DNA of 64,000 bases, taken from Neoechinorhynchus agilis (Eukaryota > Animalia > Acanthocephala). Location of the stretch: assembly GCA_051530055.1 (NCBI GenBank), contig JBMGUZ010000006.1, positions 1-64,000 of the forward strand, given 5' to 3'. The translations under genes were made by a program, and so were the position numbers. The notes below the pieces were generated by a model. It made no database searches and was not told where the DNA came from. It worked only from the letters and a program-made list of their open reading frames with translations. Positions 16,396 through 62,129 of this stretch are shown one piece after another (the first letter of the stretch is position 1; the number at the start of each line of letters is the position of its first letter).

Positions 16396-16411
16396 AGAAC
16401 TAAATAAGATA

Positions 16412-34365: not shown

Positions 34366-34394
34366 TATGGAATTAAAAAGTACAGTTAATCCAA

Positions 34395-34810: not shown

Positions 34811-36009
34811 GAGTCGCGGTCCCGTGAGCATTGAGAAAATACTGGAAGGCTTATGGTACGTGATCCCAAATTGTAAAGAACATGCATTCTCTATTGATAG
34901 AGTTAAAGGCGTTCTGAAAATCCCTCAAAACGGCAACGAAACCCTTCCTTCGTGGGTCCTTTACGAACCTCGCGAAATTTCATTTCGAAATTGTTAAATA
35001 TCTTTTCGAAGGAGTCAAAGACACTTCAAAATCATCACTGGTTCAAAGAACTGAGCGCGGGAATGCGAAGAGCCGTGCCCATGATGGCGCACAGTTATTT
35101 ATTAGGCAATCGTTAAGGAATCCCGTAAATGTTATGGCGACCTGATGTCGTACGCAGTTTGAGATCCGTTTCAGGACGTTCCTGAGCAGAACCCGCACTA
35201 TATCAGATAACGAAATAGAGTCAGTGGTGATCTGAGAGGTCCCAGGGATTGTGGTGGGGAACCAGACCCGCCACAGCGGAGATCCCGGGGACCATGGGCA
35301 AACAAAACCCTAAAATATTTTAATTTAAAGACTTATCGCAAACCGAGCACACACCAGTAGAGACGCGTTTGAGCTCGGATGCGTTGGTCTTCACAGGTTG
35401 AGCGCGATCGATAAGTTGCGCGTTCAAGGTGTCTTCGTCAGTAGCTCGATGCAATTAGTGCCCGTTCGTAGATTGAAACCAGTGAGTTCTGAATAGAAAT
35501 GTGACGACCATCCCCACCAGCTACAACATTTTTCCCTTTCTCTTTGATGAGAAAAATACGCTTCGAGAGGTTCATATGAGCCCATTCGTCAGGAGACGCA
35601 CTGACCATAGCTTTAGCGATATCGGTGATGTTGGCCTTGCCGAGTACATTCGTGTCTCGGTTTGACAGGCAAGGAAACTGTTTATAATGCTGGTAAGCAT
35701 TCTTCAGAATGAAAGTCACAAAGAGTTTTGACCACGTTGTTGAGGCCCGAGGTTTTAATCCACGATGTAGCTGCTTGCTGCGAAGGAACGAATTTTTTCT
35801 TAGAGACAACGCGATACCATTGAGAAGAGTTGGGAAGGAGTGATTTGATCCTACCTCTATCCTTGTTCAGTTGGAAACGAGCCCTACAAGGCCAGTGTAA
35901 TGCTGACCAGAATTTAATTCCTCCCGTAAAGGGAAAAAGCACGCGGGGTTTCATCGAAGCAATTAATTTGCCTAACTATAGTTAGGAGTCTACACCCGGT
36001 AAATGAGTA

Positions 36010-36060
36010 TTTATTAAAGACGTTTCGAAGCTCGTCGGGTTCATCATCAGTTTGTTAGTA
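36010..36060 (-). ncRNA. Weak minimal hammerhead-like motif (mirror at 57281-57335, +)
   Basis: aaa CTGATGA T GAA..TTC GAAAC GTC ttt; stems I and II are only ~3 bp. Confidence 0.35.
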
Positions 36061-37688: not shown

Positions 37689-37971
37689 TAAAAAAGAGAG
37701 GCAGGGAATGTCAAAAACTATCACACGTTGATCTTATCGGGTGGAATCCGAAGCTTCAATCTGTAATCCGGCTTGTTTCCATCAAAAATGGATGACGACT
37801 GGATATACACAGCTTCCATGACCACACGACTGAATCGATCGTGACTTCGTAATAACACTTGCGTGTTATCAAAATCGATATGATGTCCAGTATTCACAAC
37901 GTGTGAGACCACTGCAGAACTCAAGTCATTCTTTCTGTTTATCGATCGCCTGTGCTCCTGAATTCTCCTAT

Positions 37972-39129
37972 TTAGATCGTTCGTTTGTCCGATCGAAGTC
38001 TTGATATGAAATCCTTACCATTATCAATAGTATTATCGGAAGATCCCATTATACTACGCAGCATATCTGCTATTTTTCGGGACATATCAGTACAGAATGC
38101 CGAGTGGGCAGCCACTATAGGTCGAAACCTAATAGGGTTTTTGTGTACCTTGGCGAGAAGGTATAGTCTGGGCGTTTTTGCATCAGTAGAGCGAAGTGCT
38201 TTATAATCATCAGGAGGAAGCTTCCCTTGATTTTTCAATCTCAAAATAAATGAGTTGAATTCCCTTTCACGACTTTTTGTTTGGCATGTACTGAGCTGCT
38301 CAAACTCATTACCGTTGAGGATTTCAAGGCCTGCTTCTCGATATTGTTGTGAATTCGTAATACAATATCCATACCCCTTATCGATCTTGACCAAAACTAC
38401 ATCATTGATGTCCCTGAGAAGGTCCATTCCACGCTGCATTCTCCGGGAGATGTTAGAGTTAACATTCCTATTTTTAATAAATGAATCATAGTACTGTTCT
38501 ATCTTCCAAGTTGGTATATTCAGATTATCATATTCGAGTCGCGTTGCAAGTTTCTCTAGCTTGATTCTGTATTCAAACTTCTTAGGTGGCGTATAAGGAA
38601 TGAAATCGGGACCATAACTAAGTAGCTCCAGTACTTCGTCTGGCAGAATAATGTTCGACATATTATATACCTCATTCTTGTGATCAGAAGCAGTATAAAA
38701 TCTATTCTGGGTCAGTCGATTAAGCTTTCGAATATGGCGATTCAAAATACCTTTTTCTTCGATATCCATGTGATCTTTGACACAGAACTCTACAAGTTGG
38801 CAATATTCTGAACTTATCCATCTATTGACATTCTCTATGCAGTTATTATAGGAGATCGAATTGTTTTTGACATTGTTGACCATACATGAAATAGTATTAT
38901 CAAGCATGCGCTCCATCATGTACTTTTTCCGTAGCGAATTGTCAAAACCAAGAGCAGGTGATCTTAGATGAAGGAAACTTGGAAAAACACCATAGTTTTT
39001 GCAGTCCCTTAAGAAATCAAGAGCCATCAGTGATCTCATATTCCTCAGACCAAATTTGTCCAATTCCCTTACCGCTTGAAGAGCAGACTCCCCATATATC
39101 TGCTTTATACTGTTGAAGATAAAATCCAT
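37972..39129 (-). CDS. PLE A ORF: N-terminal domain and first RT motifs, truncated
   Basis: ORF track, 385 aa; ATG lies immediately after the 5' pLTR. Confidence 0.85.
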   Translation of the reverse strand: MDFIFNSIKQIYGESALQAVRELDKFGLRNMRSLMALDFLRDCKNYGVFPSFLHLRSPALGFDNSLRKKYMMERMLDNTISCMVNNVKNNSISYNNCIENVNRWISSEYCQLVEFCVKDHMDIEEKGILNRHIRKLNRLTQNRFYTASDHKNEVYNMSNIILPDEVLELLSYGPDFIPYTPPKKFEYRIKLEKLATRLEYDNLNIPTWKIEQYYDSFIKNRNVNSNISRRMQRGMDLLRDINDVVLVKIDKGYGYCITNSQQYREAGLEILNGNEFEQLSTCQTKSREREFNSFILRLKNQGKLPPDDYKALRSTDAKTPRLYLLAKVHKNPIRFRPIVAAHSAFCTDMSRKIADMLRSIMGSSDNTIDNGKDFISRLRSDKRTI

Positions 39130-39434: not shown

Positions 39435-40395
39435 TAGGACTTGGCAATGAAAGATTGTATTTTATCAACTTGAATTTTCGGCCTGCTCGCTGGCCTTCTT
39501 CAGAATCTAAAATACATTCACACGGTCACTGTTGAATCTTTTGCCCCCTCGTGAATATATCGGGCGGTACCCGTAGGTTGAGGGTGTAATCGGCCTTATT
39601 ATGCGTGGATGTGTTTAATTGTTGAATAAAAGTGGCCTCCATCGCAGTCCTGTCCCTACGGTTTCCGTTCCTCGCAAGGATTTCAGCCCTCTCAAAATTG
39701 ATCCTATGTCCATTATCTATGATGTGATGAACTATTGTCGAGTTCGTATTCGTAATTTTGCTGACTGCTTTTCGATGCTTCGTCAATCGTCTCTTGATAT
39801 TATATGTTTGTCCGATATAAGATTGATCGCAGTCTAGGTGTGGGAATTGATCATTTCCTCTTTTTCGGGTCCTAAGAGACTGTTTTGTGTACGCCCTTTT
39901 TTGTCCAATATAATTTGCATTCCTTTTTTGTGTCAAGTCGTTTGATTAGAGATTCCATCTTTGAATTCCAATCCCCATTTATGCATGGGACTACAATGTA
40001 TCTTTTTTCCTCATTTGCCATTGATTCCCTTGTTTTAATTAGCCTTGCATCCTTCCTCGCTCTTGCGATGTATTTCTTTGGGTACCCACCTCTTCTGAAG
40101 ATATTCCATAGTCGATCCGGTTCGTTCTTGAGGGGTACCATCGTCTGAGCAGTATCGATATGCCCTGATAAATAGCGATCGAGTCTTTGATATCTTGTAT
40201 TTTTGTGGTTGGGCAGAGATCCAAGGAACAACCTGATGTGGGCACCTTGTTTAATGGGGAGCACGGTCCCCAACTGAACAAAGAACTTATTGGGATGAAC
40301 AAGCACATACAATGGACACACGAACAAGAATAATGGGTTGCCTTACAATTCCTAGATGTCAACATTAAGATTAACTTGGATGGCACTTTCTGGAG
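39435..40395 (-). mobile_element. Penelope-like element B: 5'-truncated and 5'-inverted; thumb plus GIY-YIG endonuclease plus hammerhead
   Basis: SAQPQKYK..RSLFIRAYRYCS...GGYP, YIGQT..IKRRLTKH...EILAR...MEATFI on the minus strand; IQWTHEQE...FLDV...GTF on the plus strand at ~40225-40395. Confidence 0.85.
39456..39516 (-). ncRNA. Minimal type I hammerhead ribozyme 3' of the PLE B endonuclease ORF
   Basis: TGTATTTTA gatt CTGAAGA A GGCC agcgagca GGCC GAAA ATTC aagttga TAAAATACA: 9-bp distal stem I with internal loop, palindromic AAUU stem III. Confidence 0.85.
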
Positions 40396-41734
40396 TAATG
40401 CCAATTATTAGACTAAATGTGTTCAGTGCGCACAAGAACAGATTCGAGTCGTCTACATTGGGAAGATGGACGTATTTGTGAACAGTTTCGTAATGCTTTA
40501 CCTAAAGAATGCCACTTCCTTTTCAGTTGGCTTCGCGGCTCAGTACCTTCAAGATGCATTAACCCGCTTGGTCGATCGACAGTGAGAGCGAGGGCTCAAA
40601 TTCTAGATCAGAAATCCATGGGACACGATCTTATTTTATTTGAATTTGGACAGTTCGATCTAAAGACTAAAGTGGTTTTCAATGACAAGAATATCAGATG
40701 GGTGGGTTATAAGATGTTGGGTTAGTTCGTCGTTCTCAACCCCCAAGAAATTACGCTATTGATCTCGGAACGACGTGAGAACCTTCCTCCTGACTTTTGG
40801 CAAACGAGACCGTGTCGCCCGGAAACATCAACCAAAGAACCACATCGACAGCGATGGAGCGTGCAGATCGGGAGACCAAGTCTCAAGGAAACTGCGATCC
40901 TCGTTACCTCATCAGTGAGAAGAGTTCCCATGGATGCCAGAGGAACTGCCTCCAACCACGCCCCGATTTTCGTGTCGAAATTGCCGACAATCTGGCTCGG
41001 ACGACCCCATCGCGAAAACCTGAAAGTAGTGAGCTGTGAGCTCTCGCGGCGAGAGGTATTTCCCAGATCAACTGTCTGACGCCATTCACGGGAACATGGT
41101 TAGCGCCTGTCTGCTGGCACCATTCTTCAACTGCCACCACAAATTCTTGGTCGAGACAAAACTTTTCCCTCAGAATTTTCTTCGCTATTGGTTGACTCCC
41201 CTCAAACAATCCAAGAAAGGATGGCAAGGTCTACTAGCGCCCGAATGCCCATTCCCCCAGATGACACAGACAATGAAGATTGTCGCCACGAAAACAATGA
41301 ATTAAACTCGTTAAGACGACCAAGTGACGGAATTAATGGATATGGACGAAGACATGGGTTGACCTTTCATTCCTAGAGTGAGTCATGAACACCTCGGGAA
41401 CATACAACAAAAACCTCAACATCGTGCGAATTCAAGCGATTCACAGTACCTCGATACCAAGTTAAAAAAAGCCATTTTCGATCTCAATAACGACGAACCC
41501 CGTTCAACCCAGGGAATCCCTTAACAAGGCTTACGCAGCGCCGTAGCTCAAATCACTCAAAGACGATTACAGTCATATTAAGTCAATTTCGCTCAATGGT
41601 GGAGTTTTGAAAATTCACTTCATCTCCGATTTATTTAAGAAACAATTGAGGAGTTTTTCCTTACTAGATTTCAGGAAGATCCTAGCCTGCAATACACGGA
41701 TTCAAGCTATACATCTACGTTCATCGTTTCTCCA

Positions 41735-43265: not shown

Positions 43266-43314
43266 TTTAGATGACTGAAGAGGCGTGGATACCTCGCGAA
43301 ATATTTCGGATAAA
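43266..43314 (+). ncRNA. Candidate orphan minimal hammerhead ribozyme within a 29-bp-arm fold-back
   Basis: tttaga tga CTGAAGA G GCG t GG ata CC t CGC GAAA TATT tcg ga taaa; same GAAATATT stem III as the PLE A motif. Confidence 0.6.
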
Positions 43315-43318
43315 TAAC

Positions 43319-45660
43319 CTGTGCTCGATGTCCTCTCGTATGGATGGCCACCAACAATAATACCTTTCTAGGTCTTTCATTGTTGTTATCCCGGGGTGTC
43401 CAGTATGTAAGACATCAAGTGCTTTATTCCTCAATGCCTGGGCGATTATAAGGCGTTGCAACCATAGGATGACTCCGTCCTCTACTGAAAGCTCTTGTCT
43501 GCGAGACGAATATTTATGTAGTTCCGGAGGGGCCAACCACTCACTAAGTTGAAAAACTGCCGGAGCTGAGCTGATTCCAAATGGCAGTCGTTTGTATCGG
43601 AAAAATCCTCGATGGGTCGAGATTGTCAAGTATTTCCTAGAGTCCGCGTTGGCAGGTAGTTGTAGATAAGCATCTTTCAAATCGAGCCTTGAATACTACT
43701 CACCTCCCGCTATTTGGTTGACGATCTCTTCCCATGTAGGAATGGCGTAGTTATCGATTGTTAGATGTGGATTAATTGTTACTCTAAAGTCTCCGCATAT
43801 CCTGATATCACCACTGGTTTCCTTGCAATCACAATCGGCGCAGCCCAATCGATAGAGTCTTTACGTAGATCCACTTTCTCCAGCACATCTCATTCTAACT
43901 GCCTTATCAACTCGTTTTCTACTTTGTTCTTCAATGTCAGTGGAATTCTTCGACTTGCACATCTTCTCGGTGTGGCATTGGGTTCTATTGCTAGTGATAT
44001 TTCGGTATTATTGACAGGAGTATTCGATTCATCGAAAATCGACTTATTCTTCAATAGTAGCTGATCGATTGAGGTAACGACCGAATCGATATCTGATTCT
44101 GTTTGCTGGCTATCAAGCCTGTGGCATACGACATCAGGCCAAGGAACTTCGAAAACGTCTATCCAAGGACGCCCAAATAGACTATACTTCCCGTTTCGTA
44201 CCACCATGACTTCTAACTGCTTTTGTCTTTCTCCCAAACTCGCATTGATATTGCATTTTCCCAGGGTTACTAACCGTTTGCCACCATACGCCTTGAGGGG
44301 TTTGGCAGCATTCAAAGTTGGCTGGCCTATTCTACGCCAATATGTCATAGTCAACACCGATACACTGGCACCAGTATCATACTCCATCGTTATTTGTATC
44401 CCATTTATTTGGACATCTATTCTTGGAATCTGATTCTCCACTATCGTTGTGTGGTTTGCATCCATTATCTTATTTAGTTCTTCAATTTGATCTACTGGGT
44501 ACCTTGATCGGCAACACGATCTGAAATGACCCGTCCTTTAGCGTTTGAAACAACTCTTGTTCTTTGCTGGACACTGATATTTCGTGCTCTATTCCACATC
44601 TTTTACAGCGTTGTTTAGGTCTTTTCTCCCTCTGATCACGTGTATTATGCCGTTTTCGAATCATGTCAATTTCAAAAAACTTTCCGTCTTGCATATATTT
44701 TGCTGTGTACGAATCATTCGGAAGTTCTTGACCTACATACTGCTTCCTCCACGACGTATTCTTTATCATTTCAAACGTTTCACAAATCTTCATCACGCCG
44801 CTCAAAGAAGGTGCTGCCATTTGCAAAATTTTGTTCCTCGCCTCATCGTGTGGCGTTCCAATCGCTATCTGGTCTCTGATCTGGTCTTCGATCGCATCTT
44901 TTTCCGAATTGATGGATTTATTGAAAAATTGACACAATCCAGCTTCTTCTCGTAGGTCTACAATCCATGATGCATAAGATTGACCATTTTTCATTTCGTA
45001 TTGACTAAATGCGAAACGCGCAGCGACGATATGGATTGGGCGTGAGTGATGGGTATCCAGCAATTCTATTAATTCATGGTAATCATAATGGTTGACATCT
45101 TTTCCCGTATTTAGACTTGACAGTAGTTGGTATGCCGAGGGCCCAATCCATGATAGGAACATGTTTCTCATCATTAGTCGATCGGTGACATTTTGAGCAG
45201 CAAAGTGGAACCCGATTTGTTGTTTGTAGCTTCGCCGGCTTTCTTTTTCCTCAAGAAAGCGCCGGAATCCCGTTGCTCGCACATTATCCTTCCTGGCAGT
45301 CGTGTTCGAATTGGCTAGAGACTCATTTATTTGACCATATTTTACAATATTCAGTTCTATTCACTTACATGATATAAATTACATTATCATTAAGTAGAGT
45401 GGACAAGTTGCTTAAATTGGTTAGGATACTGCTTACTTTAGATTGACTATATTCTTACAGCGTATACTCAAGCTTAAGGCGTAGCTCAAACTTGCTTACG
45501 TCCGGAAGCAACTGTTCTAATAATTGTTGCTGTTATTGGAGAATTGTTCTTAATAAACCACTCTCGTCGCCAGTTGTGGTAGCCATACAACAACAACTTG
45601 TTTATTATTCGAAGTCCGTCTTCCAACTAGCACACGCTATCTATATGTGTGTGGTCCGAA
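43319..45660 (-). mobile_element. Inverted copy of the Mag-like Gypsy element, truncated in the integrase zinc-finger region
   Basis: gag 44482-45282, protease 43890-44465 and RT-INT fusion 43267-43680 are nearly identical to the left copy. Confidence 0.9.
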
Positions 45661-47084
45661 TCGATATTCAAAGAGTATAAAGGGCAAAATATTTAATTGG
45701 CTGGAAACTGTATTCATCGGAAATGATAGTAAAATCCTCATCGGTAAGCTCCGGCGCAACCTGTGTTCGTTATTCAGATCGGCCACAGCCGCTGATCTAC
45801 AGAACATATTGGCTTGCTTTGACGCAAACTTCCTTGGTATAAAAGATTTTGTGATGAGATGACTAGAAGAGGCGTCAATTAATATTTTATTGAAAACTTC
45901 TCAGGAGACCTTCGAAGATGATGACCGAGTTTTTGATATGAGATAGATGAAGAGATTAATATATGTTCCGTTTAAATTGATTTTATCCTTGATCTTTATA
46001 CCATTATATGAGAAACAGATCATGGGTAAAACTTTCTTTAGGAAAAATCCGTCTAAATAGTAAGTATAATTATGAAAGGATGGGAATTTTGGTAGGTGTA
46101 GTAAATGGTTGTTAAAAAGTCCCAAGATATTTGCTATTAAAGTCTGCAATAATTATATCCGTGTCCCAAAAAGGGGGTTTTCATCTGGGTTTTAATAAAA
46201 AAGAGACCTTGCGTGGGTTAATGTAAGCGAATAGGAGAAGTTGGCAAAGTTTGGAGTTTTTGTTTGAAAGAGTAATTTAGCCTCACGATTTTTGCTTAGA
46301 ACGGATTGTAACCCTCTTGAGAAATCCAAGCGGTTTCCATTGGGTGATGAACTAAAATTTAAGAGCAAGGAATCATATTTACTGTTATTGACTAGTAAAC
46401 ATGACCCAGTCTCTTGAAAAAATAAATGATCAGGATTTGAGAATGCGAAAAAGGGCAAAAGGAGTCTGGGGAGCGATTGGGACGAAATGCATTGTAAGTG
46501 ACAAATGAAAAATCTAGATTACTATTGGTTGGGAAATTATTCATTTTTATGAAGGTTTGCCCTTTTTTTATCAAAAGAGGAGTGTGAGGAGAGATGCCAT
46601 TTTGACGAGGCTGGATCAGAGCCTTCTTGAGTGGTTACGCTAAGAATATCAATTGCATCTTTTGGGACTATGCTTTCGTTAAAAGGGAGTCCACATTTTT
46701 ATGCGGCAGAGAGCTTAGTGAGTTGTTATTTACAATGTCAAGTGCTGCCTTATCCCAGGCTATATTCGGGGGAATGAATGTTGCTTTAATCATAGGAGAT
46801 GAAGGGATGTTTGAGACTTCCTTACTTGTAGAGAAGGAATCCTTTATTATTCGAAAGTTAGAAAGTGAATTTACAAATAGATTGTGGTTGTTTGGAAGGA
46901 CATATTCGAACGTAAGCGGGTGATTAGGAGTAATTACAGAAGCACGGACGAGAAGGGCGGTGAACAGCCTGTTATTCCCGGTGGTACTCCCGGAATTATG
47001 AAAGGATCGATATTGCTTACCTGCTCAATAACCGGAAGTTTAACACACTCACGCTCACGAGATTGAGCTTCATCATAATGACGA

Positions 47085-48996
47085 TCCCCCGGTATGGACC
47101 ATTCACCAGCGAAGTAAGTAGTGATATTCAATGGTCAGTTGAGCAAGAGGAAAATGGTCGCATCTCTTTCATGGATCGGGCAAAAAGAGGCACATTCGAA
47201 AGGTTGATGTACCATAAACCTAACTCACCTTGAAGACCCCCAGTATGGACCAGTCATAAGCGAAGTAGTGATATTCAATGGTCAGTTGAGCAAGAGGAAA
47301 ATGGTCACATCTCTTTCATGGATCGGGCAAAAAGAGGCACAGTCGAAACGTTGATGTACCATAAACCTAACTTACCTTGGAGACCCCCAGTATGGACCAG
47401 TCATTAGCGAAGTAGTGATATTCAATGGTAAGTTGAGCAAGAGGAAAATGGTCACATCTCTTTCATGGATCGGGCAAAAAGAGGCACAGTCGAAACGTTG
47501 ATGTACCATAAACCTAACTTACATTGGAGACCCCCGGTATGGACCAGTCACCAGCGAAGTAAGTGGTGATATTCAATGGTCAGTTGAGCAAGAGGAAAAT
47601 GGTCACATCTCTTTCATGGATCGGGCAAAAAGAGGCACATTCGAAAGGTTGATGTACCATAAACCTAACTCACCTTGGAGACCCCCAGTATAGACCAGTC
47701 ATTAGCGAAGTAGTGATATTCAATGGTCAGTTGAGCAAGAGCAAAATGGTCACATCTCTTTCATGGATCGGGCAAAAAGAGGCACATTCGAAAGGTTGAT
47801 GTACCATAAACCTAACTCACCTTGAAGACCCCTGGTATGGACCAATCACCAGCGAAGTAAGTGGTGATATTCAATGGTCAGTTGAGCAAGAGGAAAATGG
47901 TCGCATCTCTTTCATGGATCGGGCAAAAAGAGGCACATTCGAAACGTTGATGTACCATAAACCTAACTTACATTGGAGACCCCTGGTATGGACCAATCAC
48001 CAGCGAAGTAAGTGGTGATATTCAATGGTCAGTTGAGCAAGAGGAAAATGGTCGCATTTCTTTCATGGATCGGGCAAAAAGAGGAACATTCGAAACGTTG
48101 ATGTACCATAAACCTAACTTACATTGGAGACCCCCGGTATGAACCAGTCACCAGCGAAGTAAGTGGTGATATTCAATGGTCAGTTGAGCAAGAGGAAAAT
48201 GGTCACATCTCTTTCATGGATCTCGCAAAAAGAGGCACATTCGAAAGGTTGATGTACAATAAACCTAACTTACATTGGAGACCCCAGTATGGACCAGTCA
48301 TTAGCGAAGTAGTGATATTCAATGGTCAGTTGAGCAAGAGGAAAATGGTCACATCTCTTTCATGGATCGGGCAAAAAGAGGCACAGTCGAAACGTTGATG
48401 TACCATAAACCTAACTTACCTTGGAGACCCCCAGTATGGACCAGTCATTAGCGAAGTAGTGATATTCAATGGTAAGTTGAGCAAGAGGAAAATGGTCACA
48501 TCTCTTTCATGGATCGGGCAAAAAGAGGCACAGTCGAAACGTTGATGTACCATAAACCTAACTTACATTGGAGACCCCCGGTATGGACCAGTCACCAGCG
48601 AAGTAAGTGGTGATATTCAATGGTCAGTTGAGCAAGAGGAAAATGGTCACATCTCTTTCATGGATCGGGCAAAAAAGAGGTACAGTCGAAACGTTGATGT
48701 ACCATAAACCTAACTCACCTTCGAGACCCCCAGTATAGACCAGTCATTAGCGAAGTAGTGATATTCAATGGTCAGTTGAGCAAGAGGAAAATGGTCACAT
48801 CTCTTTCATGGATCGGGAAAAAAGAGGCACATTCGAAACGTTGATGTACCATAAACCTAACTTACATTGGAGACCCCCAGTATGGACCAGTCATTAGCGA
48901 AGTAGTGATATTCAATGGTCAGTTGAGCAAGAGGAAAATGGTCACATCTCTATCATGGATCGGGCAAAAAGAGGCACAGTCGAAACGTTGATGTAT
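47085..48996 (+). repeat. Tandem satellite with 147/151-bp units, ~13 copies
   Basis: 13 recurrences of ttgatgta at ~147-151-bp spacing. Confidence 0.95.
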
Positions 48997-51106
48997 CCAA
49001 CAGCTCACAAAATAAGGGAGATGCATTGCCGCGTATAAGAAGATATTACGATAAATCCTCGAGATTACGCGTGTTTTTTATTTTTCGTAAAGATGAGACA
49101 TTCGGAATCATGAGGCAAAAGTCATTGAACAAATTATGGTATTCGGCTACGCTCGGAGGTGATCTCTCCATTGTACTGTGCGATTTGGAGACGCTGATTA
49201 GGGAGACCTCGAGAATGGACATAGAGCTCATACTCCAGAGCAACTCAGCCTCCTGGGTAGTTGCGCATTTGATTCAAATGTGGAAGCTAAGATCGGCCGC
49301 ATCATACCGAAACTATCGTTGCTGTGTGATAGGGTCAGCGCTGTCTCCGCTCACGAAGCATTATTTCTGATAAAGAACGCACTCTTTCTCCCGAAATTGT
49401 TATTGGCAACAATCTTCAAACATAAAGAAGGATTGGCCGAGCTCGACGACAAGGTGAGGGCTTGTCTCTAGCGTATTTTAAATGTACAGCTCTCAGATGA
49501 GGCGTGGCGACAATCTTCATTGCCTGTGTCATGCCTTTCTTGGCGAAAAAAATTCTAAGGGAAAAGGTTTTGTCTTGACCAAGAATTTGTGGTGGCAGTT
49601 GAGGAATGGTGCCAGCATGCAGGAACTAACCATGTTCCCGTGAATGGCGTCAGACAGTTGATCTGGGAAAGGCCTTTCGCCGCGAGAACTCACAGCTCTC
49701 TACTTTCAGGTTTTCGTGATGGGGTCGTCCGAGCTCGATTGTCGGCAATTTCGACACGAAAATCGGGGCGTGGTTGGAGGCTGTACCTCTGGCATCCTTG
49801 GGAACTCTTCTCACTGATGAGGTAACGAGGATCGCAGTTTCCTTAAGACTTGGTCTCCCGATGAGCACGCACTATCGCTGTCGATGTGAGTCTTTGGTTG
49901 ATGCTTTTGGGCGACACGGTTTCGTTTGCCAAAAGTCAGGAGGAAGGTTCTCACGCCATTCTGAGATCAATAGCGTAATTTCTCCGGCGTCGAGAACGGC
50001 GAACTAACCCAACATTTTGGAACCCACCAATCTTTGTCGACATCTCTTTCTAGATTTTCATTTGCAAGACATTTGTAAAATTCTGCCTTTTAAAATTTAC
50101 TTAAGGTCATGTTGCCTTGCAATTCACTGATTATTGATAATCTCATACGAGAATTTGTTAAATTGGAGGGTCTCTGTTTCTTTAGATGTGAAAAAGTGAC
50201 CAAGTTATCATTGGGGGCCTTGGACATAATATTATTCATTTCAGTTAATTTTATACAGATTAGATTTTATTTGATGGTTTGAAATTAATGATAGTCTTGT
50301 CATTGAAAACCACTTTAGTCTTTAGATCGAACTTTCCAAATTCAAATAAAATAAGATCGTGTCCCATGGATTTCTGATCTAGAATTTGAGCCCTCACTCT
50401 CACTGTCGATCGACCAAGCGGGTTAATGCATCTTGAAGGTACTGAACCGCGAAACCAACTGAAAAGGAAGTGGCATTCTTTAGGTAAAGCATTACGAAAC
50501 TGTTCACAAATACGTCCATCTTCCCAATGTAGACGACTCGAATCTCTTCTTGTGCGCACTGAACACATTTAGTTTAATAGTTGGCATTACTCCTCGTGCA
50601 AAGTGGCATTTTTGACGTCAATCGTCCTTGGACATTGCTTGCCGGATGCTTTTTCGGAGGGCTCCTGTGAACTGATCGAATTTATAGACCTGTCTCTTTT
50701 TGAGCCTCCGGATGTCGCTCTTGGGTTTTTTCTCTAACGAATGGGATCCTGAGGACCGCTAAGACATCACTATTCATTTCCCTCTTTCTCGAACTTCCAC
50801 CAGCTGATTCTGTTGGTCGTTGAAACTTCTCGATTTCCCGATCCTCATAACCATCGATACCATGCAAATAAATGCAAAGATTATTAAGAACTATAATATT
50901 TCTCAATACCAAATCGATCAAGGAACGTCATTATTCCAGCGCGTGAACAATATTTATAACGTGCTTTTTAGTATTGCGGAAGGAAAAATGTTGTCATTAA
51001 GACATGTCAATTGCTGTTTTTTTATCAAGAGATAGAATCTACAACCTATTGATTTTTATTGATACTTTTATTAATAGGAAGGGACACTTTCTTTTTGATA
51101 GTTACT

Positions 51107-51418
51107 TTACTCTTGAATTTGACATTCATCTTTTGGCAATTTAATCTCAATAAGCTTATCCAATTCCTCCTTAGGTGTTGATTTGTTCATAGGTGTAATT
51201 ATATTTCGATACTTCATTTCTACCCTGAGCTTGGGAGAATCTACACGGATATCGTCTTTTGGATTCATACTATGACGTTCACAAGATAGCTTTTCATTTA
51301 ATATTTTATAGCAATTCTCTCGATTGCTTTTGTATCTCCCATTTAGATGCAGTGGTCCGAAATGCACACTCAGAGTATTAATACTATTAATTTTTTGGCA
51401 CAATAAACATTTTAGCAT
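51107..51418 (-). CDS. Hypothetical 103-aa protein with N-terminal CxxC, intact
   Basis: ATG-to-TAA ORF; second intact copy at 62130-62441. Confidence 0.4.
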   Translation of the reverse strand: MLKCLLCQKINSINTLSVHFGPLHLNGRYKSNRENCYKILNEKLSCERHSMNPKDDIRVDSPKLRVEMKYRNIITPMNKSTPKEELDKLIEIKLPKDECQIQE

Positions 51419-52476
51419 ATTGGTGAAACTATCATCGTCGTTTTTAGTGCTTCTTTTCCTACTATTTCATTCATTATTTAAGTTGGAATTATAAGATTGA
51501 GGCCTTTGAGCTTGTTGGAATTGTTTTCGATTCCGCAAGTTCAAAATTAGCGTCCATATTTGCATTTTACCTGCAGGGGGGCTGAATTCAAATCTTTTTC
51601 TTCGTTCAATGACCACAAAACGGTTTCAATTAAATTAAATGCTTCAAAAGAGAAGAGATATTGGATAACGGTTTCGAGACCATTTTCGTCCGCGTTCCAT
51701 CCTTTCAAAAATCTAATGAAATCCAAGCAAGAAATTTTTCTATTAAATCGAGGGTGGAAATTTCGGACAAATTTACATCATGAGATCTCGAATTGAATCT
51801 GTATTTTTGGGGTATTTTTGGAAGTAAAATTTGATGAAATGGGTTAATCGATCAATAGATAGCGAGGTATTAGCACAAACGTTTTTCCCTCCACATATTT
51901 CGGAACATCACGTGTATGGTTTCCTCAATGAAAAGTAGCCAATCAGCATGCTCTAATTACCTGTCTTTGTAAAAAGCATCGAATTTTAATGCTAAAGTAA
52001 CTGTAAGGTATTAACAACAACTAAGTCGCTTGTTCCGAAACGAATTTTCACGCCTCATTAGTTGTGTGTCATTAATTTTACGGTTCAATCGACAGATAAA
52101 AATCGACTTCTTTAACACGTATCGGTGTTTCAACCGTAGACAATCAATACGTTTGTGATATCCGTTGTAATGTCTTGATAAGTGTCGCAAGCGATACAGT
52201 AAAGAATTTTCGAATCAGAATGTTGCAATTCAGCGGAGTTTTAGTGATATGAAATGTCATAAAATTTGCAGAAATTGCATTAGTTTTGATTTGGAATGAT
52301 TTGAAAATCACCTGCCATTCGAAGCGCTGCGTCAGGTTTATAGAAACATTTTGCTGTTAAGTAACTGAACTTTTTCGTGGATCATTAGAAAACCTGATAA
52401 AGAAAGTAAAGCCTCCAAAATCTCGACTAACCGTAGTTTCCTAATTTTAGACAGTTCAGAGCTACAGATTTGAAGT

Positions 52477-53322
52477 ATGACGACAAGACAACCATTCAGG
52501 ATAAGGGCACCACCAATCGAGGAAAGCGCACAATTCCTGCGGAACCACATCTCTGGTCAGCCCAATAGTTTCAGTCATCCAGATCCACCAACGTTCAACA
52601 TTATTCACCAAGGTCACCAAATATATAATCCCTTCGATGATGATATTTACCTCGATCGAGAAGTCGAAAAAATTTTGGAAAACGCAGATAATACTATAAA
52701 TAATTGTGCACCTCCGCCCGGCTTTGATGATTTCACTTTTATTTTCAATGAGTCACCACCAAGCATAGATGACTTCAGTAATAATCATTCATCGATTGGA
52801 AATGAAGAATATTGCTTACCTCCACCAGGTTTTGAAAATTGCTCATTTTCTTATTACGATTACGAGCCCGAAAACGAAGGATACTTCTCAACTCCACCAG
52901 GTTTCGAGAACGTGACTTTTGATTATTACGATTCACGATCAGGAATGGACGAATATGGCTCACCTCTTCTCTATTGTGAGAATCCGGCCTTTAATCACGT
53001 TTGGAATGGAAACGAAGATTACTACGAATCGTTTCTCGATTTTCAGGAATCAACCGTTATATTTAATGAGTCGTCGTTGGAATTCGAAAAATACAGCGAG
53101 TTTTTCACTTTATTTAGTGAAGTAGAGCCAAAAGAACCTCAAGGTCGTTATGTACGCCCAGCGACGTGCAAGATAATAGATTTGCAGGAAAGTAGCACGC
53201 AAACGGAGCCGAATATCGTATCGAAACCTTGGAATGGATTGACAACAATAAAGAATATTATTGATGCCGTCTACCAAGTGGCCGTTGCGGCATTCAACTA
53301 CTTCAGAAGGATATTTTTCTGA
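52477..53322 (+). CDS. 281-aa PPGF-repeat protein, copy 3
   Basis: Intact ORF. Confidence 0.75.
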   Translation: MTTRQPFRIRAPPIEESAQFLRNHISGQPNSFSHPDPPTFNIIHQGHQIYNPFDDDIYLDREVEKILENADNTINNCAPPPGFDDFTFIFNESPPSIDDFSNNHSSIGNEEYCLPPPGFENCSFSYYDYEPENEGYFSTPPGFENVTFDYYDSRSGMDEYGSPLLYCENPAFNHVWNGNEDYYESFLDFQESTVIFNESSLEFEKYSEFFTLFSEVEPKEPQGRYVRPATCKIIDLQESSTQTEPNIVSKPWNGLTTIKNIIDAVYQVAVAAFNYFRRIFF

Positions 53323-56289
53323 CCGTTCAAAGTTAAGTATCGATTATTTATAAAATGTGTTATTATTATATAGTTTTGTAACTGTTCGTGAAATTAAAAA
53401 TGTTTCATATTCGAACAAGGCCTTGGTTCATTAGCACTTATACAATCATACAAATATTTGGGAGCACTTGATTTTTATATCGCACTATTTCTTTATTTGT
53501 GGTAGCCAATCCTCCAATGTTCTAAATTTGAATTAGTGAGAGCGTTGGTAAGCGTGTACACGAAGTTGCAAATGATAAGAGTAGAAGAGAAAAAGGATGA
53601 GGTTCCATAGAAGCGATTCTTAAAAGAGAGAATTTGCATTACAAAAAGATATTTTTTGTTAGAAAGAGAAGTTTAGAAGAGTGAGATTTAAGAATAAATT
53701 TTTGGAGTCCTCCAGAGAAACCAATATGCTGATTTGTTGAAGAGGAGCAAGAGGAAGAATATGAGAATCATAATTATCAAAAGGAAACAATGTATAAAAG
53801 CCGCTTTCTTGAAAACATAACATTTTAACATAATTATCAAATACACAAGGAGTAAGAAAAACGGGAAGACGCGAAGCCCTAGAGGCGGATTTAAATTTAT
53901 CTGCAATTCTGCTTGATATAAGATCCAATGAAGGCAAGCATTCTTCAAATCAAACATCAGATTTAGAAATTCTATTTTGGCGAATTAAATTGGTAGCGTA
54001 AAACTATTTTCTAATCGATTAAAGTAAAACAAGATTGTAAAACAAGGATTTATTGATCTCTACGAGTGTAGTTATTCAAAGTAAGTGCTTATGATAAATA
54101 CCATGGAAAATTGAAAATATTTTAAAAAGTAAATCAATTCATCTGTTGATTTGAGTTTCTTTTTAAACAGCCGTAATCAAAATCAGTGCCAAATATAAAA
54201 CCAAATATCTATGTGTAGCCCTTTTCACGACTGATAATTTTCCTTGGGCGCGCAGCCCACCGATATAAACCGTAAAAAGGCCCCACGTAGATACTGGATA
54301 AAAGTTACCGGTTGATCAAACTTCAAAAAAAATAAAATAATTGCAATATCTATGATAAGGGGACACAAGATTTTCTAACGGTTCTACAAAAATTTAATTT
54401 TTCAACTACTTGACCTTCCGCGCACGTTTTGTTATGCAGAGGCAACGCCGTTCTCAAAGCACGACAAAGCTGGAAATTAGAATTACTTTGTTCTACATCT
54501 TAATTTATCATTTGATACCTTTTAATCATTTGCAACTATAATTGTGATCGTATAATTTTTACAGTCTTTTAAAGTTACACAAACAATATTGTAATATTTC
54601 CAATATTTTATACCGTGGTCAACCTAAAAAGCGTCGAATAAAAACTATTTACATTTTGTAAGAAAAATGTTTAATGTGAATTATTTTTTAAAGATGACCG
54701 GATCGTTTGGTAATTCTTGATCATTAAATCACTTTAAGTATTGCCATTAAATTCGGATACGACGATGCTCGAAATCTCCATTCAACACTTTAGGGCATCG
54801 AATGCGAATTTTGATGGTAGCAATAATATTTTCCTGAGCTTTCTATTGCTCATCCATCATTTCATTCTTCGAACAAGAAGTCTGTATCGATTTTTAATAA
54901 AATGCTGGTCCAAAGATCGTAGAAATTTTCAAGCTTTCGTGTTTTGCTGTGAAATATTCTAATATGTCTAAAAAAGCGGTCTTGTAGTTATTTTCCTTGA
55001 AAGACGACCATTGGATTGAAATGACCTGAAGAATATTGTTAATGCTTTTTATTGCCTCGAAAAAGCATGGGCGTTGTATACTAAGTAGAGTTTGCGGTGG
55101 AAACTCTTGACTCGATTTCAATGAAGTTAATTTTTGAATACACGATTTATTTTAACGACTTTTATATTTATCTCACTTTGGTTTTTAGAAAAGATTCAAA
55201 TATACTTGTATTGGAAGGTAAAAATTAATTATAATTTTAGTCTTTTAAGCTCTGTTGGATTCATCGCAACTTTCAAGGTAAGGTGTTTATTGACGAGTTC
55301 ATAGATAGCGAAGAGCGCAAGAAGTTTTTCTCCGTGAGTTAAGGTAAGGCTCACTTTTCAAAGAACATCAAAAGAGTATCGATTTTCGCTAACGAACTCT
55401 CACTGCGAAAAACAGCTTTCTAACTTTCACTTCTATCTCGAAACAATTTACAGTAAGTTGCGGCCTCAGGCCAAAGCCCAATGACGAGTACAGTGTCCGT
55501 TCGGACGCTTCAGAGGGCAACGAAAAAAATTAAAGAAAATTTTTGTATCCATCGATGAAGATTTCTGTTTGTTTCAATTCCACAATTCGGGATGAAAATG
55601 GACATTGAAGATGTCAATGTGACCGCGAAGCATCGACATCCTGAAGGAAATGAATTCACATTTCCAAAAACCAATTCTAGCATTTACGCAAAAGGTTTTA
55701 TAACTTTAGCTTTTCGCCAGAAAGATTACATTAACGTTTCATTTGACTTTGTTTCTTCAACTGTTAAAAAAATACATTATCTTAACCGGTCGAACACTTT
55801 CGAGTGTACCAATGAACAAAAATTTATGCCAATATGATCGCATTATTAATAAAACGCGTTATGTTCCCTCTACAAATCGAAACCAAATCAATAACAAATC
55901 ATTAATTTTGTATTTTTTCATGTCGACCAGAAAATAATGTTAAAACAATGAATTAAACTCGTTAAGACGACTAAGTGACGGAATCAATGGATATGGACGA
56001 AGACATGGGTGGATTTTCATTCATGGAGTGAGCCATGAACACCTCGGGAACATACAACGAAAACCTCAACATCGTGCGAATTCAAGGGATTCACAGTACC
56101 TCGATACCAAGTTAAAAAATGACCATTTTGGATCTCAATAACGACGAACCCCGTTCAACACAGGGAATCCCTTAACAAGGCTTACGCAGCGCCGTAGCTC
56201 AAATCACTCAAAGACGATTACAATCATATTAAGTCAATTTCGCTTAATGGTTTAGTTTTGAAAATTCACTTCATCTCCGATTTATTTAA

Positions 56290-57199: not shown

Positions 57200-60100
57200 G
57201 GCTCGAAGAGTTCTCGGCGAACATCCTAAGCTTAAAAATGTCGATATGAGAGATACCGGGGAACGTGATTAGCCGTCTATTACTAACAAACTGATGATGA
57301 ACCCGATGAGCTTCGAAACGTCTTTAATAAATACTCATTTACCGGGTGTAGACTCCTAACTATAGTTAGGCAAATTAATTGCTTCGATGAAACCCCGCGT
57401 GCTCTTTCCCTTTACGGGAGGAATTAAATTCTGGTCAGCATTACACTGGCCTTGTAGAGCTCGTTTCCAACTGAACAAGGATAGAGGTAGGATCAAATCA
57501 CTCCTTCCATACTCTTCTCAATGGTATTGCGTTGTCTCTAAGAAAAAATTCGTTCCTTCGCAGCAAGCAGCTACATCGTGGATTAAAACCTCGGGCCTCA
57601 ACAACGTGGTCAAAACTCTTTGTGACTTTCATTCTGGAGAATGCTTACCAGCATTATATGCAGTTTCCTTGCCTGTCAAACCAAGACGCCATGATCTTGC
57701 AATTTCCGATATTGTGCTCCACGAGGACGGACAGTTTCCGACGGCTCATCAATACTTGGAAGCTTCACGAATGCAATTGACAACGGGTAATTATGAAGAC
57801 AATGCTGCCGAGTTTCGTCCCATTGGTGCAAAAGTTCGGTTTGCGATAAGTCTTTAGTTCAAAATATTTTTAGGCTTGGCTTGGCTCACGGCTCCGGACT
57901 CCCCGTGGCGGCCCTCCACGACAGATCTCCGGGACCTCAGATCACAACTGACTCTATTTGGTCTGATATGGGGTGATAGGTCTCTACCTGAAACGGATCC
58001 CAGACATCAGGTCGCCACTGGGCGGATTCCCTTAACGATTGCCTAATAAATATCCTCATCACGGCTCTTCCCGCGTCAGTTCTTTGAACCAGTGATGATT
58101 TTGAAGTGTCTTGACTTCGAAAAGATAGTTTAACAATTTCGAAATGATTTCCGCGGCAAGCCTCGTAGCGGCGCGGGCTTGCCGTCGTCTTGAGATTTGC
58201 CTTTAACTCTATCAATAGGAGAATGCATGCTCTTCGAATACGTACCATAAATTCCAGTAGCTTTTCAATGTCGGACTTTGCTTTTTGAAGACCACCTCAT
58301 TTGGTACGAAAGAGGAGTGCAGCAAGGAGATCCTCTCGATCCAATCGCATTCTCCCTAACAGTAAATCCAATAGCGCACTCTCTCTATTCCAGCTTCAGC
58401 GCTTGGTATTTGGATGCGGCTACACTCGGAGGAGATCCCTCCGTTGTACTGTGCGATTTGGAGACGCTGATTAGGGACACCTCGAGAATGGACATAGAGC
58501 TCATACTCCAGAGCAACTCAGCCTCTTGGGTAGTTGCGTATTTGATTCAAATGTGGAAGCTGAGATCGGCCGGATCATACCGAAACTTTCGTTGCTGTGT
58601 GATAGGGTCAGCGCTCTCTCGGCTCACGAGGCATTATTTCGGATAAAGAACGCACTCTTTATCCCGAAATAGGCCTTCGATCGCGATCTTATTGGATTAA
58701 CTGTACTTTTTAATTCCATATTGCAAATAGGACATCCTCCAAAAGCTTGGCTGGAGAACAAAACAATTCTCCTACCAAAGAACAATTCGAGCTCTCGATC
58801 ATATACGGATCCAAAATCTGTGCGGCCGATCACAATATCGTCGATTTTACTACGAATTTTCCACCGTATAATACTCGCAAGATTACGAACAGCATGCCCT
58901 GTGTCTGAACATCAAACAGCGTTTGACAGTACATCATGCTTATCAAACATCCTTCGTTTGACAGTACATCATGCTTATCAAACATCCTTATATTAAGGAG
59001 TCTTATGAAGCAAAAGCGTTACGAAAAGAAACCGCTCCATATAGCGGTACTAGACATTACGTCCGCATTTGACACGGTAAGTCATGAAACTGTGTCCAGA
59101 ACATTACGAGAGCGCGACTGCCCTCCTTATTTACGGCGATATCTTATGGAGGTGTTAATGTCTTCGCACACCCGGCTACATCTACCTAACTCGAAACCGT
59201 CGGACCCTATTTATTTTCGCCGAGGCGTTAAGCAAGGTGATCCTCTGTCGCCATTTATTTTTGCATTATGCATTGATGATGCGCTTCAGCAGGTGGACAG
59301 GTTAGGTCTGGGTAGCTTAATAAGATCTCGTCGTCTAAGTCAGCTTGTATATGCAGACGATATTCTCTTGCTTTCAGATCAGAAAAAAGACTTACAATCC
59401 ATGATTGATCGGCTATCATCTCTTTTAAAGGAAAAGGATTTACATTTTTCGCCACACAAATGTAGGACTTACTCCCAATCGTACATTAACGGCAACAAAA
59501 TAATTGCACACGACCCTCAATTCGAAATCGATGGAATGAAGCTGAACACAATATTAAACGGTGATCCAGTGCAGTATCTCGGAGGCACTCCTTGGATGCC
59601 TACAACAATTGACTCCATCAAGAATGATATTACTCATTTATTCTTAAAAACCAAGGAAGCAGGCCTAAGACCAACACAAGCAGCGCATCTAATTAACGAC
59701 TACGGACTGCCCCAAATTATAGCAAAACTTCAGGCAGCTCATGACATTTCCGTATCAAACATTGATACAGTCGAACAATTCTGGCGGACCAAGCTGAGGA
59801 AACTTTTATTTTTACCTCACTTTCTGAACGATGGTGCAATATTCCTGCCCCTGAACAAAGGTGGTCTAGGATACAAATCTATTAAACAATCAGTCATGGA
59901 TATGCGACTAAAAGTATACAAACGCAAAGAAACGTTGCTCCGAACTCGAAATTTTATCGGAATATAAAAAAACTGTCCAAAAATATTTCGAAGGACTTGG
60001 TTCGACTGAAGAAATTATTGATACCGCGCGCGCTAAGGCACTGCATATTTCGAGTAACATCAATAAGTGGACGAAAGCGAAGACGCAATCGCAAGGAATT

Positions 60101-60850
60101 GAATCGTTCACAAATGGAAACTTCGAACGAAAATCTTTATCATTCCGATACAGACAAGACAGCCACAAACATTACAAGGAATTGGTAAAGATGCGATTCC
60201 AATTGCTCGAAGTAGGCGCGAATTTGGCAACAATAGACCACGACAGGACGAGGAAATGTCGACATTGTTCAGCCGAAGCTGAAACACAAATGCATGTGCT
60301 AAACAGCTGCCCCTACAGTACGGGCATGATGATAGAGCGCCATGATGCCGTACAAAATCGATTCATATGGGCTCTAAACAAGAGATGGGGTTCTCGGTAT
60401 GAAGTACTAACCGAGAATCGTATCCACGATCCTGGAGGGCAGCTGTACAAACCGGATGCTATATTGGTCGATAGAAACGCGAAAAAAGCAATCATAACTG
60501 ACTTTGCCGTATACTATGAAACTACAAATGAACGGGCAGAGGAAATTATGAATGCGAAGGAGGACAAATATAAGGCCATTAAAGAAGAGGTAGCCATAAA
60601 GCTGGGATTTGCTCCTCACCGCGTATCGACAATGGGCCTCGCCGTCGGCTCAAGAGGCACATATTCAAATGGAATAACAAGGCGGCTCAATATCATTGGT
60701 CTATCCTCAGGCACCGCACTAAACATGGCTTCAACGGCAGCGGAAAAAAGCCTCAAGACATTCCACGTCTTCATGAGCAGAAGCCGAAGGACGAATCATC
60801 TTTATACAACTTAAAGAAAAAGAGGAAAGCAACATTCTTCAAGCATAAGG
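57200..60850 (+). repeat. Inverted copy of ~32619-36130
   Basis: Mirrored ORFs 32658-33290/60182-60814, 34440-34808/58278-58646, 35682-35954/57387. Confidence 0.9.
58721..60850 (+). mobile_element. R2-like RLE non-LTR retrotransposon, 5'-truncated, with complete RT core, CCHC and endonuclease; two frameshifts
   Basis: RPITISS..RIFH, LDITSAFD, RGVKQGDPLSPFIF, YADD, YLG, PLNKGGLG, CCHC, KPD..D...K; 35-bp tandem duplication near 58920-58990 and a frameshift near 59940. Confidence 0.9.
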
Positions 60851-62129
60851 AAGGATTGGCTGAGCTCGACGACAAGGTGAGGGCTTGTCTCGAGCGTATT
60901 TTAAATGTACAGCTCTCAGATGAGGCGTGGCGACAATCTTCATTGTCTGTGTCATCTAAGGGAATGGGCATTCGGGCGCCAGTAGACCTTGCCTTGCCAT
61001 CCTTTCTTGGATCGTTTGAGGGGAGTCAACCAATAGCGAAGAAAATTCTGAGGGAAAAGTTTTGTCTTGGCCAAGAATTTGTGGTGGCAGTTGAGGAATG
61101 GTACCAGCATGTTCCCGCGCCGTGACAGTTGATCCGCTGCTGGTGAGATCTCACAGCTTCGGCGATGGGGTCGTCCGTCGGCAATTTCGACACGAAAATC
61201 GGGGCGTGGCCGGATACCTCCGGCATCCCAACTTTTCCTTCATCGATGAAAACGAGGATCGCAGTTTCCCAAGATTTGTCTCGATGTACGCACCATCGGC
61301 CAAATCGATGTGAGTTTTTTACTGATGATTTTGCATTTGCCTAATTTGTCAAGAGGAATTGTCGCCACGCCATTCTGAGATCAAATATGCAATTTCCTGG
61401 AACGGCGAACTTCAACATCTTGGAACCCACCAATTCGATATTCTGTCATTGAAAACCACTTATCTTTAGATCGAATTGTCCAAATTCAAATAAAATAAGA
61501 TCGTGTTCCTTCGATCTAGAATTTGAATTTCTCACTCCACAAGTCGACGACTGCTGGTTCATGTCTTGGAAGGTATTGAGCAGTAACCAACTGAAAGGAA
61601 GTGGCATTCCTTGTGTACGAATGTTTAGAAACTGTTCACAAATATGTCCATCTCACAACGACTCGAATTCGTTTGTGCGCATCGAACACATTTAGTTCAA
61701 TATTGGCATTACCTCTTGCGTAGCGGTATTTTGACGTCGTACTTGGCCGCTTGCCGGATGCTGATCCTGTGAATATGACCGCTAAGGCATCAATATTCAT
61801 TTCCCTCTTTCTCGAACTTCCACCAGCTGATTCTGTTGGTCGTTGAAACTTCTCGATTTCCCGATCCTCATAACCATCGACACCATGCAAATAAATGCAA
61901 AGATTATTAAGAACTATAATATTTCTCAATGCCAAATCGATCAAGGAACGTCATTATTCCAGCGCGTGATCAATATTTATAATGTGCTTTTTAGTATTGC
62001 GGAAGGAAAAATGTTGTCATTAAGACATGTCAATTGCTGTTTTTTTATCAAGAGAAAGAATCTACAACCTATTGATTTTTATTGATACTTTTATTAATTG
62101 GAAGGGACACTTTCTTTTTGATAGTTACT

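Follow-up and report, generated by a model that had tools for sequence, protein, structure and literature searches.

The window analysed here is a stretch of 64 kb, positions 1-64000 of scaffold JBMGUZ010000006.1 of the acanthocephalan Neoechinorhynchus agilis, to which one of its own ORFs maps at identical coordinates; self-alignment showed the window to be a mosaic of segmental duplications. Its main tandem array lies on the plus strand at 47079-48999 (limits set by self-alignment), and the plus strand is also the strand on which the units read in the sense of a reverse transcriptase (RT). TRF called a period of 147 at 47116-48995 with 12.7 copies and 93% matches, and gave a higher-order period of 298 bp an equal score. 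When the array was dissected by placing cuts at a conserved word, it resolved into a 44-bp leading partial unit, 12 full units and a 93-bp trailing partial unit (13 units overall), with the full units measuring, in order, 147, 147, 151, 147, 151, 151, 151, 146, 147, 151, 148, and 147 bp. Two unit variants were distinguished, one of 147 bp and one of 151 bp, the second carrying 4 extra bases (..HQRSKW) that shift the reading frame. The initial annotation had quoted a peptide for a unit of exactly 49 codons. The 147-bp units read exactly as quoted, DIQWSVEQEENGHISFMD..RAKRGTFETLMYHKPNL.WRPPVWTSH*RSS (the middle part also given as GTFETLMYHKPNL), and the 49-codon length holds for this variant but not for the frame-shifted 151-bp variant. 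Stops were present in almost all units, and none of the units combined freedom from stops with a length divisible by 3. The start of the array falls near unit position ~104-110 and its end near ~89-97; it amounts to 13 units minus ~6-22 bp, with the start phase almost equal to the end phase. Units A2 and A9, as well as A3 and A10, were 100% identical, which marks a recent block duplication within the array. With its head-to-tail monomers of ~150 bp, homogenisation and higher-order structure, the array is organised as satellite DNA, and every unit in it matched the profile of Penelope-like element (PLE) RTs described below, at profile positions 24-61.

A second array with the opposite orientation had been reported in the initial annotation, and it was recovered as 7 units at 12771-13795 on the minus strand by TRF, self-alignment and dissection, with its RT-sense strand also being the minus strand. 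Its end phases were those of the main array, and its units were 85-99% identical to those of the main array (best unit pairs 91-99%). The two arrays have opposite orientations because both belong to one inverted segmental duplication, with one arm at 8185-17561 (plus strand, holding the twin array) and the other at 43316-53650 (minus strand, holding the main array). By self-blast, 8185-11821 corresponded to 53650-50013 at 97.1% identity and 12771-17561 to 48108-43316 at 97.9%; the duplicated block spans ~9.4-10.3 kb with arms 97-98% identical, and the flanks adjacent to the arrays reached 99.5-99.8%. The copy number differed between the arms (13 versus 7 units) despite these near-identical flanks, and the arrays have diverged in copy number and sequence after the inverted duplication. 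The significance that had been attached to the opposite orientation of the arrays was not borne out, in that this layout is a by-product of the duplication.

The surroundings of the main array were then compared with the PLE profiles and with other elements of the window. The left flank (45283-47078, strand unassigned) consists of 1.8 kb present only here and in the twin arm, and carried no RT signal in any frame. The right flank (49000-49132, strand unassigned) is 133 bp of otherwise unique sequence, also without RT signal; neither upstream nor downstream PLE profiles detected RT sequence in the flanks. To the right of these 133 bp lies an RT-deleted copy of a LINE-like element (49133-50654, plus strand) that is unrelated to the array. 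Its segments 49133-49397, 49406-49532 and 49543 onward correspond to 58408-58670, 60829-60955 and 61036 onward, respectively, of an intact copy at about 58.4-61.9 kb, which encodes RVT_1 (E 3.7e-29) and a zf-RVT domain. On the other side, 43267-45282 (minus strand) holds fragments of an LTR-type retrotransposon (gag, protease, RT/integrase; Pfam gag-asp_proteas, RVT_1, and Integrase_H2C2), again unrelated to the array. A location of the array in the leader of an adjacent LTR element was ruled out: there is no LTR pair, and the sequence taken for an LTR ('family X') corresponds to the 3' region of the LINE-like element. No PLE YxDD box was found in the 64-kb window, the upstream PLE RT profile had no match there either, and following the scaffold to 75.6 kb revealed no PLE RT core and no further satellite. 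A search for a parent element adjoining the window arrays found none. The window arrays, set in debris of LTR- and LINE-type elements, are orphan copies that lack a surrounding parent gene, because the flanks are not RT, the window holds no PLE YxDD box or upstream RT, and the array ends lie off the parent junction at unit position 139|140 identified at the sister locus described next.

The same repeat was found at a second locus of the same genome, designated L001, on N. agilis chromosome CM121341.1 (assembly GCA_051530055.1). The repeat therefore occupies at least two unlinked loci, JBMGUZ010000006.1 (as two arms of one duplication) and CM121341.1, and the arrays seen measure 1.0, 1.9, and 2.8 kb. 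The L001 array comprises 19.5 copies of a 146-bp unit that are 99% alike (99.3%) and ~90% identical to the window units. It sits between the fibrillarin and Rad1 genes, and the array alone matches the window. An automatic gene model (BRAKER with RNA-seq hints), the 141-aa hypothetical protein P0001 of Neoechinorhynchus agilis, reads the satellite there in several frames. On the array strand, the left flank of L001 contains, in order, DGVATGSPLAPVLADLYM, ~35 residues, RRYVDHAFII, ~20 residues, and the first DIQWSVE..FLD unit. PLE-type motif 4 (DGVAxGSPL..LAN..M) and motif 5 (of the RYVDD type) were thus present at positions 8990-9330 with order and orientation kept. The unique flank ended exactly at the onset of unit homology (GAAGTAG), which places the junction with the parent sequence at 139|140 in unit coordinates (CM121341.1:~2,460,160); the array starts at 140 and ends at ~56. 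The RT remnant, a short piece of ~280 bp, is interrupted by stops and frameshifts, and its frame is offset by 1 nt from that of the unit. The parent copy has no 3' half of the element, and no GIY-YIG is attached. The initial annotation had proposed finding the parent element: none adjoins the window arrays, but at L001 an RT remnant reads into the array.

Natural PLE RTs were collected as comparators for the region past the YxDD box. The motif-4 box of L001 (D-G-V-A-x-G-S-P-L-x-P) was back-translated and used as a probe to scan metagenome contigs, which yielded 120 natural loci, many of which came from samples of coral, sponge, and termite gut. Nearly all of them read DGVAMGSPL.P..AN.FM, followed by.RYVDD.F. 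Comparators were chosen independently of the region to be tested, by requiring a YxDD box followed by no fewer than 110 open codons, and 28 ORFs were retained. All of the 10 longest contained Pfam RVT_1 above threshold, and in 4 of these 10 a C-terminal GIY-YIG was present in the same ORF (L124 above threshold at 28.2 bits; three others at ~20.5 bits). RVT_1 combined with a C-terminal GIY-YIG is the canonical Penelope-like architecture. Profiles were built from 27 non-redundant natural PLE RTs with a mean identity of 42%, and the test profile contained only the residues after YxDD.

Window units scored 12.8, 12.5, and 11.2 bits against the post-YxDD profile, and an L001 unit scored 15.7 bits. 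Shuffled units had means of -1.4 to -2.3 with an sd of ~1.2 and a maximum of 7.6, none of 2000 reaching the observed values (z 11-17); with the shuffles of PLE B, a PLE copy of the window, included, the means were -0.6 to -2.3 and the maximum 8.5, and again 0 of 2000 reached any observed score. The initial annotation had held that its reading would fall if the translated unit scored no better against PLE RTs than shuffled controls; the units stood at 11-16 bits against a shuffle maximum of 7.6, an outcome that goes against refutation. A six-frame scan took in 2,841 stop-free pieces of the window plus L001; satellite units of the two window arrays occupied every rank from 2 to 18, spanning profile positions 23-29 to 47-62. 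In all three arrays the units matched one and the same segment of the profile, just after the YxDD box.

Joined with X at the breaks, the flank and first unit of L001 formed one collinear domain over profile positions 1-103, scoring 66.8 bits. The flank alone scored 48.2 bits over positions 1-62, a value that is partly circular since the first 11 residues of the flank were the probe, and a window unit mapped to 68-103 of the same profile. When the test was repeated without the probe region, the flank scored 20.7 bits compared to a shuffle maximum of 11.9 (0/2000). Between the window and L001, the upstream PLE profile matched motif 4 in L001 only, and the five best PDB matches of the L001 motif-4 piece were all RTs aligned at motif 4. 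Pfam found nothing in the short L001 pieces, and the alignment of the L001 flank with the LINE-type RT of the window was in the right register but not significant (z 1.8). The origin of the unit from a PLE RT, as originally claimed, was borne out by the profile scores and by the collinear continuation of the RT into the sister array. Together, these results established, well beyond what the window alone could show, a derivation of the unit from the PLE RT segment after YxDD (motifs 6/7 to the start of the thumb), and the RT-to-array continuation at L001 appears to be the first duplication inside a PLE copy, still preserved.

Two PLE remnants lie in the window itself. PLE A (37721-39129, minus strand) has lost its RT core by deletion. 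What is left is an intact 385-aa N-terminal ORF (KVHK..RPIV) fused to a GIY-YIG tail; the ORF was not among the called genes. PLE B is represented by three pieces. An inverted 5' RT piece (..IQWTHEQE*..FLDVNIKINLDGTF; 40271-40390, plus strand) covers profile positions ~21-55, which is the RT segment that the satellite unit also represents, and scored 16.9 bits against the post-YxDD profile (best shuffle 7.4), while the PLE B composite scored 20.7 bits. The continuation of the RT into the thumb (..PWISAQPQK..RAYRYCS..; 40038-40250, minus strand) covers profile positions 67-119 and took rank 1 in the six-frame scan (19.4 bits, E 1.3e-4); according to the profile, its first ~25 residues lie in a frame other than that of the 151-aa ORF. 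A decayed GIY-YIG endonuclease tail (39526-39936, minus strand) matched Pfam GIY-YIG below threshold (17.6 bits, E 0.0048) and was 40% identical to the tail of PLE A. An inverted 5'-truncated arrangement, as in PLE B, has been described as typical for PLEs (PMC8557442). The initial reading of PLE B was accurate on the plus strand at 40307-40390, including the 4-codon length difference from F[LM]D to GTF. The likeness of the unit to PLE B fared less evenly: the shared wording is present, but the resemblance is weak when taken alone, with z 3.6 in direct comparison and a non-significant E of 4.4 in window-wide tblastx. Since the rare IQW..EQE wording and a W.S near the thumb are common to both, the family that gave rise to the unit was probably related to PLE B. 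At the nucleotide level the similarity is almost gone, with only ~30 nt aligning loosely at ~75% identity.

Searches of databases with the unit returned little. Unit peptides had no meaningful match in Pfam or PDB; for Pfam this is because RVT_1 ends ~20-30 residues after YxDD. In a phmmer search of 1.84 billion representative proteins, a stop-free unit peptide retrieved only P0001 (the gene call on the satellite) and one junk repeat protein, and no protein reaching ~50% identity with the unit was found among these representatives. Word-index protein searches with the PLE N-terminal ORF, its KVHK..RPIV region and P0001 retrieved no PLE RTs. Viral and metagenome contigs contained no match to a GIY-YIG alignment used as bait, and viral contigs none to the motif-4 pattern. 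No parent family that is better preserved and similar to the unit at the nucleotide level was found.

We further investigated the coding and RNA potential of the arrays. Variable sites were spread 9/16/14 over codon positions 1/2/3, and because of this spread there has been no coding constraint since amplification. The units showed no codon-position bias, and each had a stop or a length that was not a multiple of 3; neither an ORF running through the units nor purifying selection, the marks of a protein-coding repeat, was detected. The unit RNA folded no better than shuffles on either strand (z +1.4 and +0.5). Rfam had no match in or near the arrays at the gathering threshold or at E<=1. Rfam models miss minimal PLE hammerheads and are hence a weak test for them. 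No hammerhead core motif was present in or beside the arrays, and no hammerhead ribozyme or pseudo-LTR associated with the arrays was found, the Rfam part of that result being weak for the reason just given.

The initial annotation had also suggested that the arrays could supply antisense or small RNA against PLEs. The longest exact word common to the array and the rest of the window was 12 nt. Since exact words do not exceed 12 nt and the alignment with PLE B covers only ~30 nt, loosely, the array very probably cannot guide small RNAs against the PLEs seen in the window, and this suggestion was not upheld. Read as a silencing of PLEs by double-stranded or small RNA from the two inverted arrays, the suggestion could appeal to two arrays of the same repeat lying 33 kb apart in opposite orientation, and to the RNA-seq-hinted BRAKER model P0001 on the L001 array. 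However, the inverted layout was inherited from a duplication that extends over 4-5 kb of unrelated sequence to either side, the only counterpart in the window is the ~30-nt PLE B alignment at ~75% identity next to 12-nt words, no close intact target RT is on record (at least ~50% identity, 1.84 billion representatives), and the RNA does not fold beyond shuffles. We therefore regard silencing as very unlikely, and infer that the arrays are without function.

In our judgement an internal piece of a PLE RT gene, ~147 bp long, was very probably amplified in tandem as non-coding DNA, starting within a PLE copy, with the window copy being a secondary orphan later doubled by an inverted duplication. 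The source piece extends from just after YxDD (motifs 6/7: IQ[FW][TS]xExE..F[LM]D..G..T..Y[RH]KP) up to where the thumb begins (W.S). The first step would have been a local tandem duplication within a dead or dying PLE copy, as kept at CM121341.1; RT slippage or rolling-circle copying, suggested in the initial annotation, are candidate birth mechanisms. Ordinary satellite dynamics, comprising unequal exchange, block duplication and homogenisation, would then account for the 147/151-bp variants, for the higher-order period of ~298 bp and for the shifts in copy number. Dispersal to the window scaffold would have followed a DNA-level route instead of retrotransposition, and the last step was the duplication of a ~9.4-10.3 kb block with the orphan array in inverted orientation. 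Target-primed reverse transcription always preserves the 3' end of the element. Because both known arrays are without that end, the window array most likely arrived at the DNA level.

Three other readings of the array's origin were weighed against this one. If the RT resemblance were due to chance, the unit would be an unrelated non-coding repeat, and the failure of Pfam, PDB and phmmer to name an RT would be expected, as would the tblastx result of the unit against PLE B. Yet no shuffle out of 2000 approached the units in the profile test, the units of three arrays fell on an identical profile segment, and at L001 the similarity continued collinearly from motifs 4 and 5, which together make coincidence extremely improbable. 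A birth of the array in place is better founded, in that a PLE copy at the scaffold locus could have been amplified there and its remainder erased by deletions and TE insertions. Truncated TEs are densely packed in the neighbourhood, two PLE remnants 7-9 kb away among them, and the element of the L001 array is damaged at both ends too. We nevertheless consider it unlikely, for no PLE RT signal was found in either flank with upstream or downstream profiles, the ends of the array at ~104-110 and ~89-97 are off the 139|140 junction of L001, and the 1.8-kb left flank is unique sequence.

The route of dispersal allows a more specific version, that the array came as extrachromosomal circular DNA, with a multimer circle opened once and re-inserted. 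Both flanks are unrelated to PLEs, and a linearised circle would have near-equal start and end phases such as those of the main array, 13 units minus ~6-22 bp. The near-integer phase of the orphan array hints at circle-mediated re-insertion, but an agreement of phases to within ~10-20 bp would arise by chance roughly 7-15% of the time, no target-site or junction signature is available for inspection, and the L001 array lacks the pattern (start 140, end ~56). Overall we hold this version of the DNA-level route to be fairly unlikely. A wider generalisation is that the PLEs of N. agilis act as a recurrent satellite factory, giving rise to dispersed satellites from their own coding sequence through a shared mechanism tied to the PLE life cycle. 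Template switching, rolling-circle reverse transcription of a short circularised RNA or cDNA, or circle-mediated re-insertion could serve as such a mechanism, and we judge the generalisation improbable. The preferred reading remains amplification within a PLE copy followed by DNA-level dispersal and inverted duplication.

Satellites derived from retrotransposon ORFs have been described repeatedly, including PROsat of Phodopus and Pvc20 of seals (both from L1 ORF2), HinfI of chicken (CR1 ORF2) and E3900 of rye (gag) (PMC9659126). The sources catalogued for ORF-derived satellites are L1 ORF2, CR1 ORF2, gag, and a transposase, with the non-coding parts of TEs being the commoner source of satellites (PMC9659126). 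The N. agilis repeat resembles these satellites in being a short internal coding segment of a retroelement, arranged head-to-tail in a non-coding array that evolves as a satellite does; it differs in its source, which here is the motif 6/7-to-thumb segment of a PLE RT. Unlike major satellites, the arrays seen here are short (1-2.8 kb) and few, and are better described as a low-copy dispersed tandem repeat. PLE-related satellite DNAs are known from the flea beetle Omophoita octoguttata (SF1 and other families; PMC11846391) and the catfish Harttia (HviSat02-2707; PMC11955569), and share with the N. agilis arrays that tandem repeats in an animal genome are similar to Penelope elements. Those reports were based on similarity of the RepeatMasker type with the part of the PLE unnamed, whereas in N. 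agilis the segment, the frame and the junction with the parent context were resolved.

Two further kinds of element-derived tandem repeats were compared. Non-LTR retrozymes are tandem hammerhead repeats that come from PLE pseudo-LTRs (bioRxiv 10.64898/2026.07.22.740005; PMC4209133). Like the present repeat they are PLE-derived and tandem; their units measure 100-400 bp, and invertebrate genomes rich in PLEs commonly contain them. The 147-bp unit, in contrast, has no hammerhead core, no Rfam match and no fold above chance, and comes from coding sequence instead of a pseudo-LTR. Tandem repeats inside the UTRs of LTR retrotransposons also seed satellites, as for Ogre and PisTR-A (PMC7004042). The likeness lies in a TE-internal tandem repeat that expands and can escape its element; the difference is that no LTR-element leader is involved here, where the supposed LTR proved to be a LINE-like 3' region. 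Both ORF-derived and PLE-related satellites have already been published, and the N. agilis repeat is an ordinary kind of transposon-derived repeat. With similar satellites described before and no function indicated, current ideas are left unchanged. New here are the formal profile test against natural PLE RTs, the demonstration that the window arrays are orphans within an inverted duplication, and the occurrence at two or more unlinked loci. The repeat can serve the annotation of acanthocephalan repeats, in which the gene model P0001 has already been placed on one array, and can inform how young tandem repeats leave their source element. It offers a clean and well-resolved case of a satellite-like repeat arising in the middle of a transposon gene, with the RT segment, the parent junction, a homogenised array in its context and an older orphan copy all present in one genome.

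As assembled, layered segmental duplication made up most of the scaffold (positions 1-64000 of an unplaced scaffold in a hybrid ONT assembly). The duplications were both direct, as between 879-11436 and 22068-32620 (98%), and inverted, as between 32621-34089 and 60850-59383 (99.9%). An ORF of 281 aa with PPGF-type repeats was open in all copies of its duplicated block (8513-9358 and 29714-30559, minus strand; 52477-53322, plus strand; 63381 onward). The NCBI annotation of the assembly includes it as a gene model, and no Pfam family was found for it. A LINE-like element occupied 58068-61875 on the plus strand, with an RVT_1 ORF (58936-59967) and a zf-RVT ORF (60182-60814). Copies were located at 32621-35063 (minus strand) and 49133-50654 (plus strand), and one copy had lost the RT internally. 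The ~1-kb 3' region of this element was also found alone at 11180-11821, 19373-20626, and 40392-41185.

A dispersed repeat family, present at 55016 (minus strand) and at scaffold position 64917, reads ..VISIQWSSFKENNYKTAFLDI.. and looks like the RT segment of the satellite. Against the profile of Penelope-like element (PLE) RTs, this family scored only 6.5 bits and at the wrong profile positions, and its likeness to the RT segment is therefore probably a matter of chance. The hammerhead-core-like word CTGATGA..GAAAC occurred twice in the window, at 36022-36050 (minus strand) and 57291-57319 (plus strand), both in duplicated sequence. This count was no excess over chance, with at least two occurrences in 7 of 100 shuffles.

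At the sister locus on chromosome CM121341.1, the NCBI gene model ACOME3_000481 (L001 10001-10496; 141 aa, one intron) reads the satellite array in several frames, and it is almost certainly a spurious annotation.

Of the two PLE remnants, PLE A (37721-39129, minus strand) retained an intact N-terminal ORF of 385 aa, ending in KVHK..RPIV. The entire RT core was deleted, and the GIY-YIG tail was fused to this ORF. The ORF was absent among called genes, and a word-index search found no relatives of it. In PLE B (40038-40390), the RT was split between a plus-strand piece at 40271-40390 (profile positions ~21-55) and a minus-strand piece from 40250 (profile positions 67-119), which almost adjoined in RT coordinates. 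PLE B is an insertion both 5'-inverted and 5'-truncated, an arrangement that agrees with what has been reported of PLEs, namely inverted 5' copies (PMC8557442).
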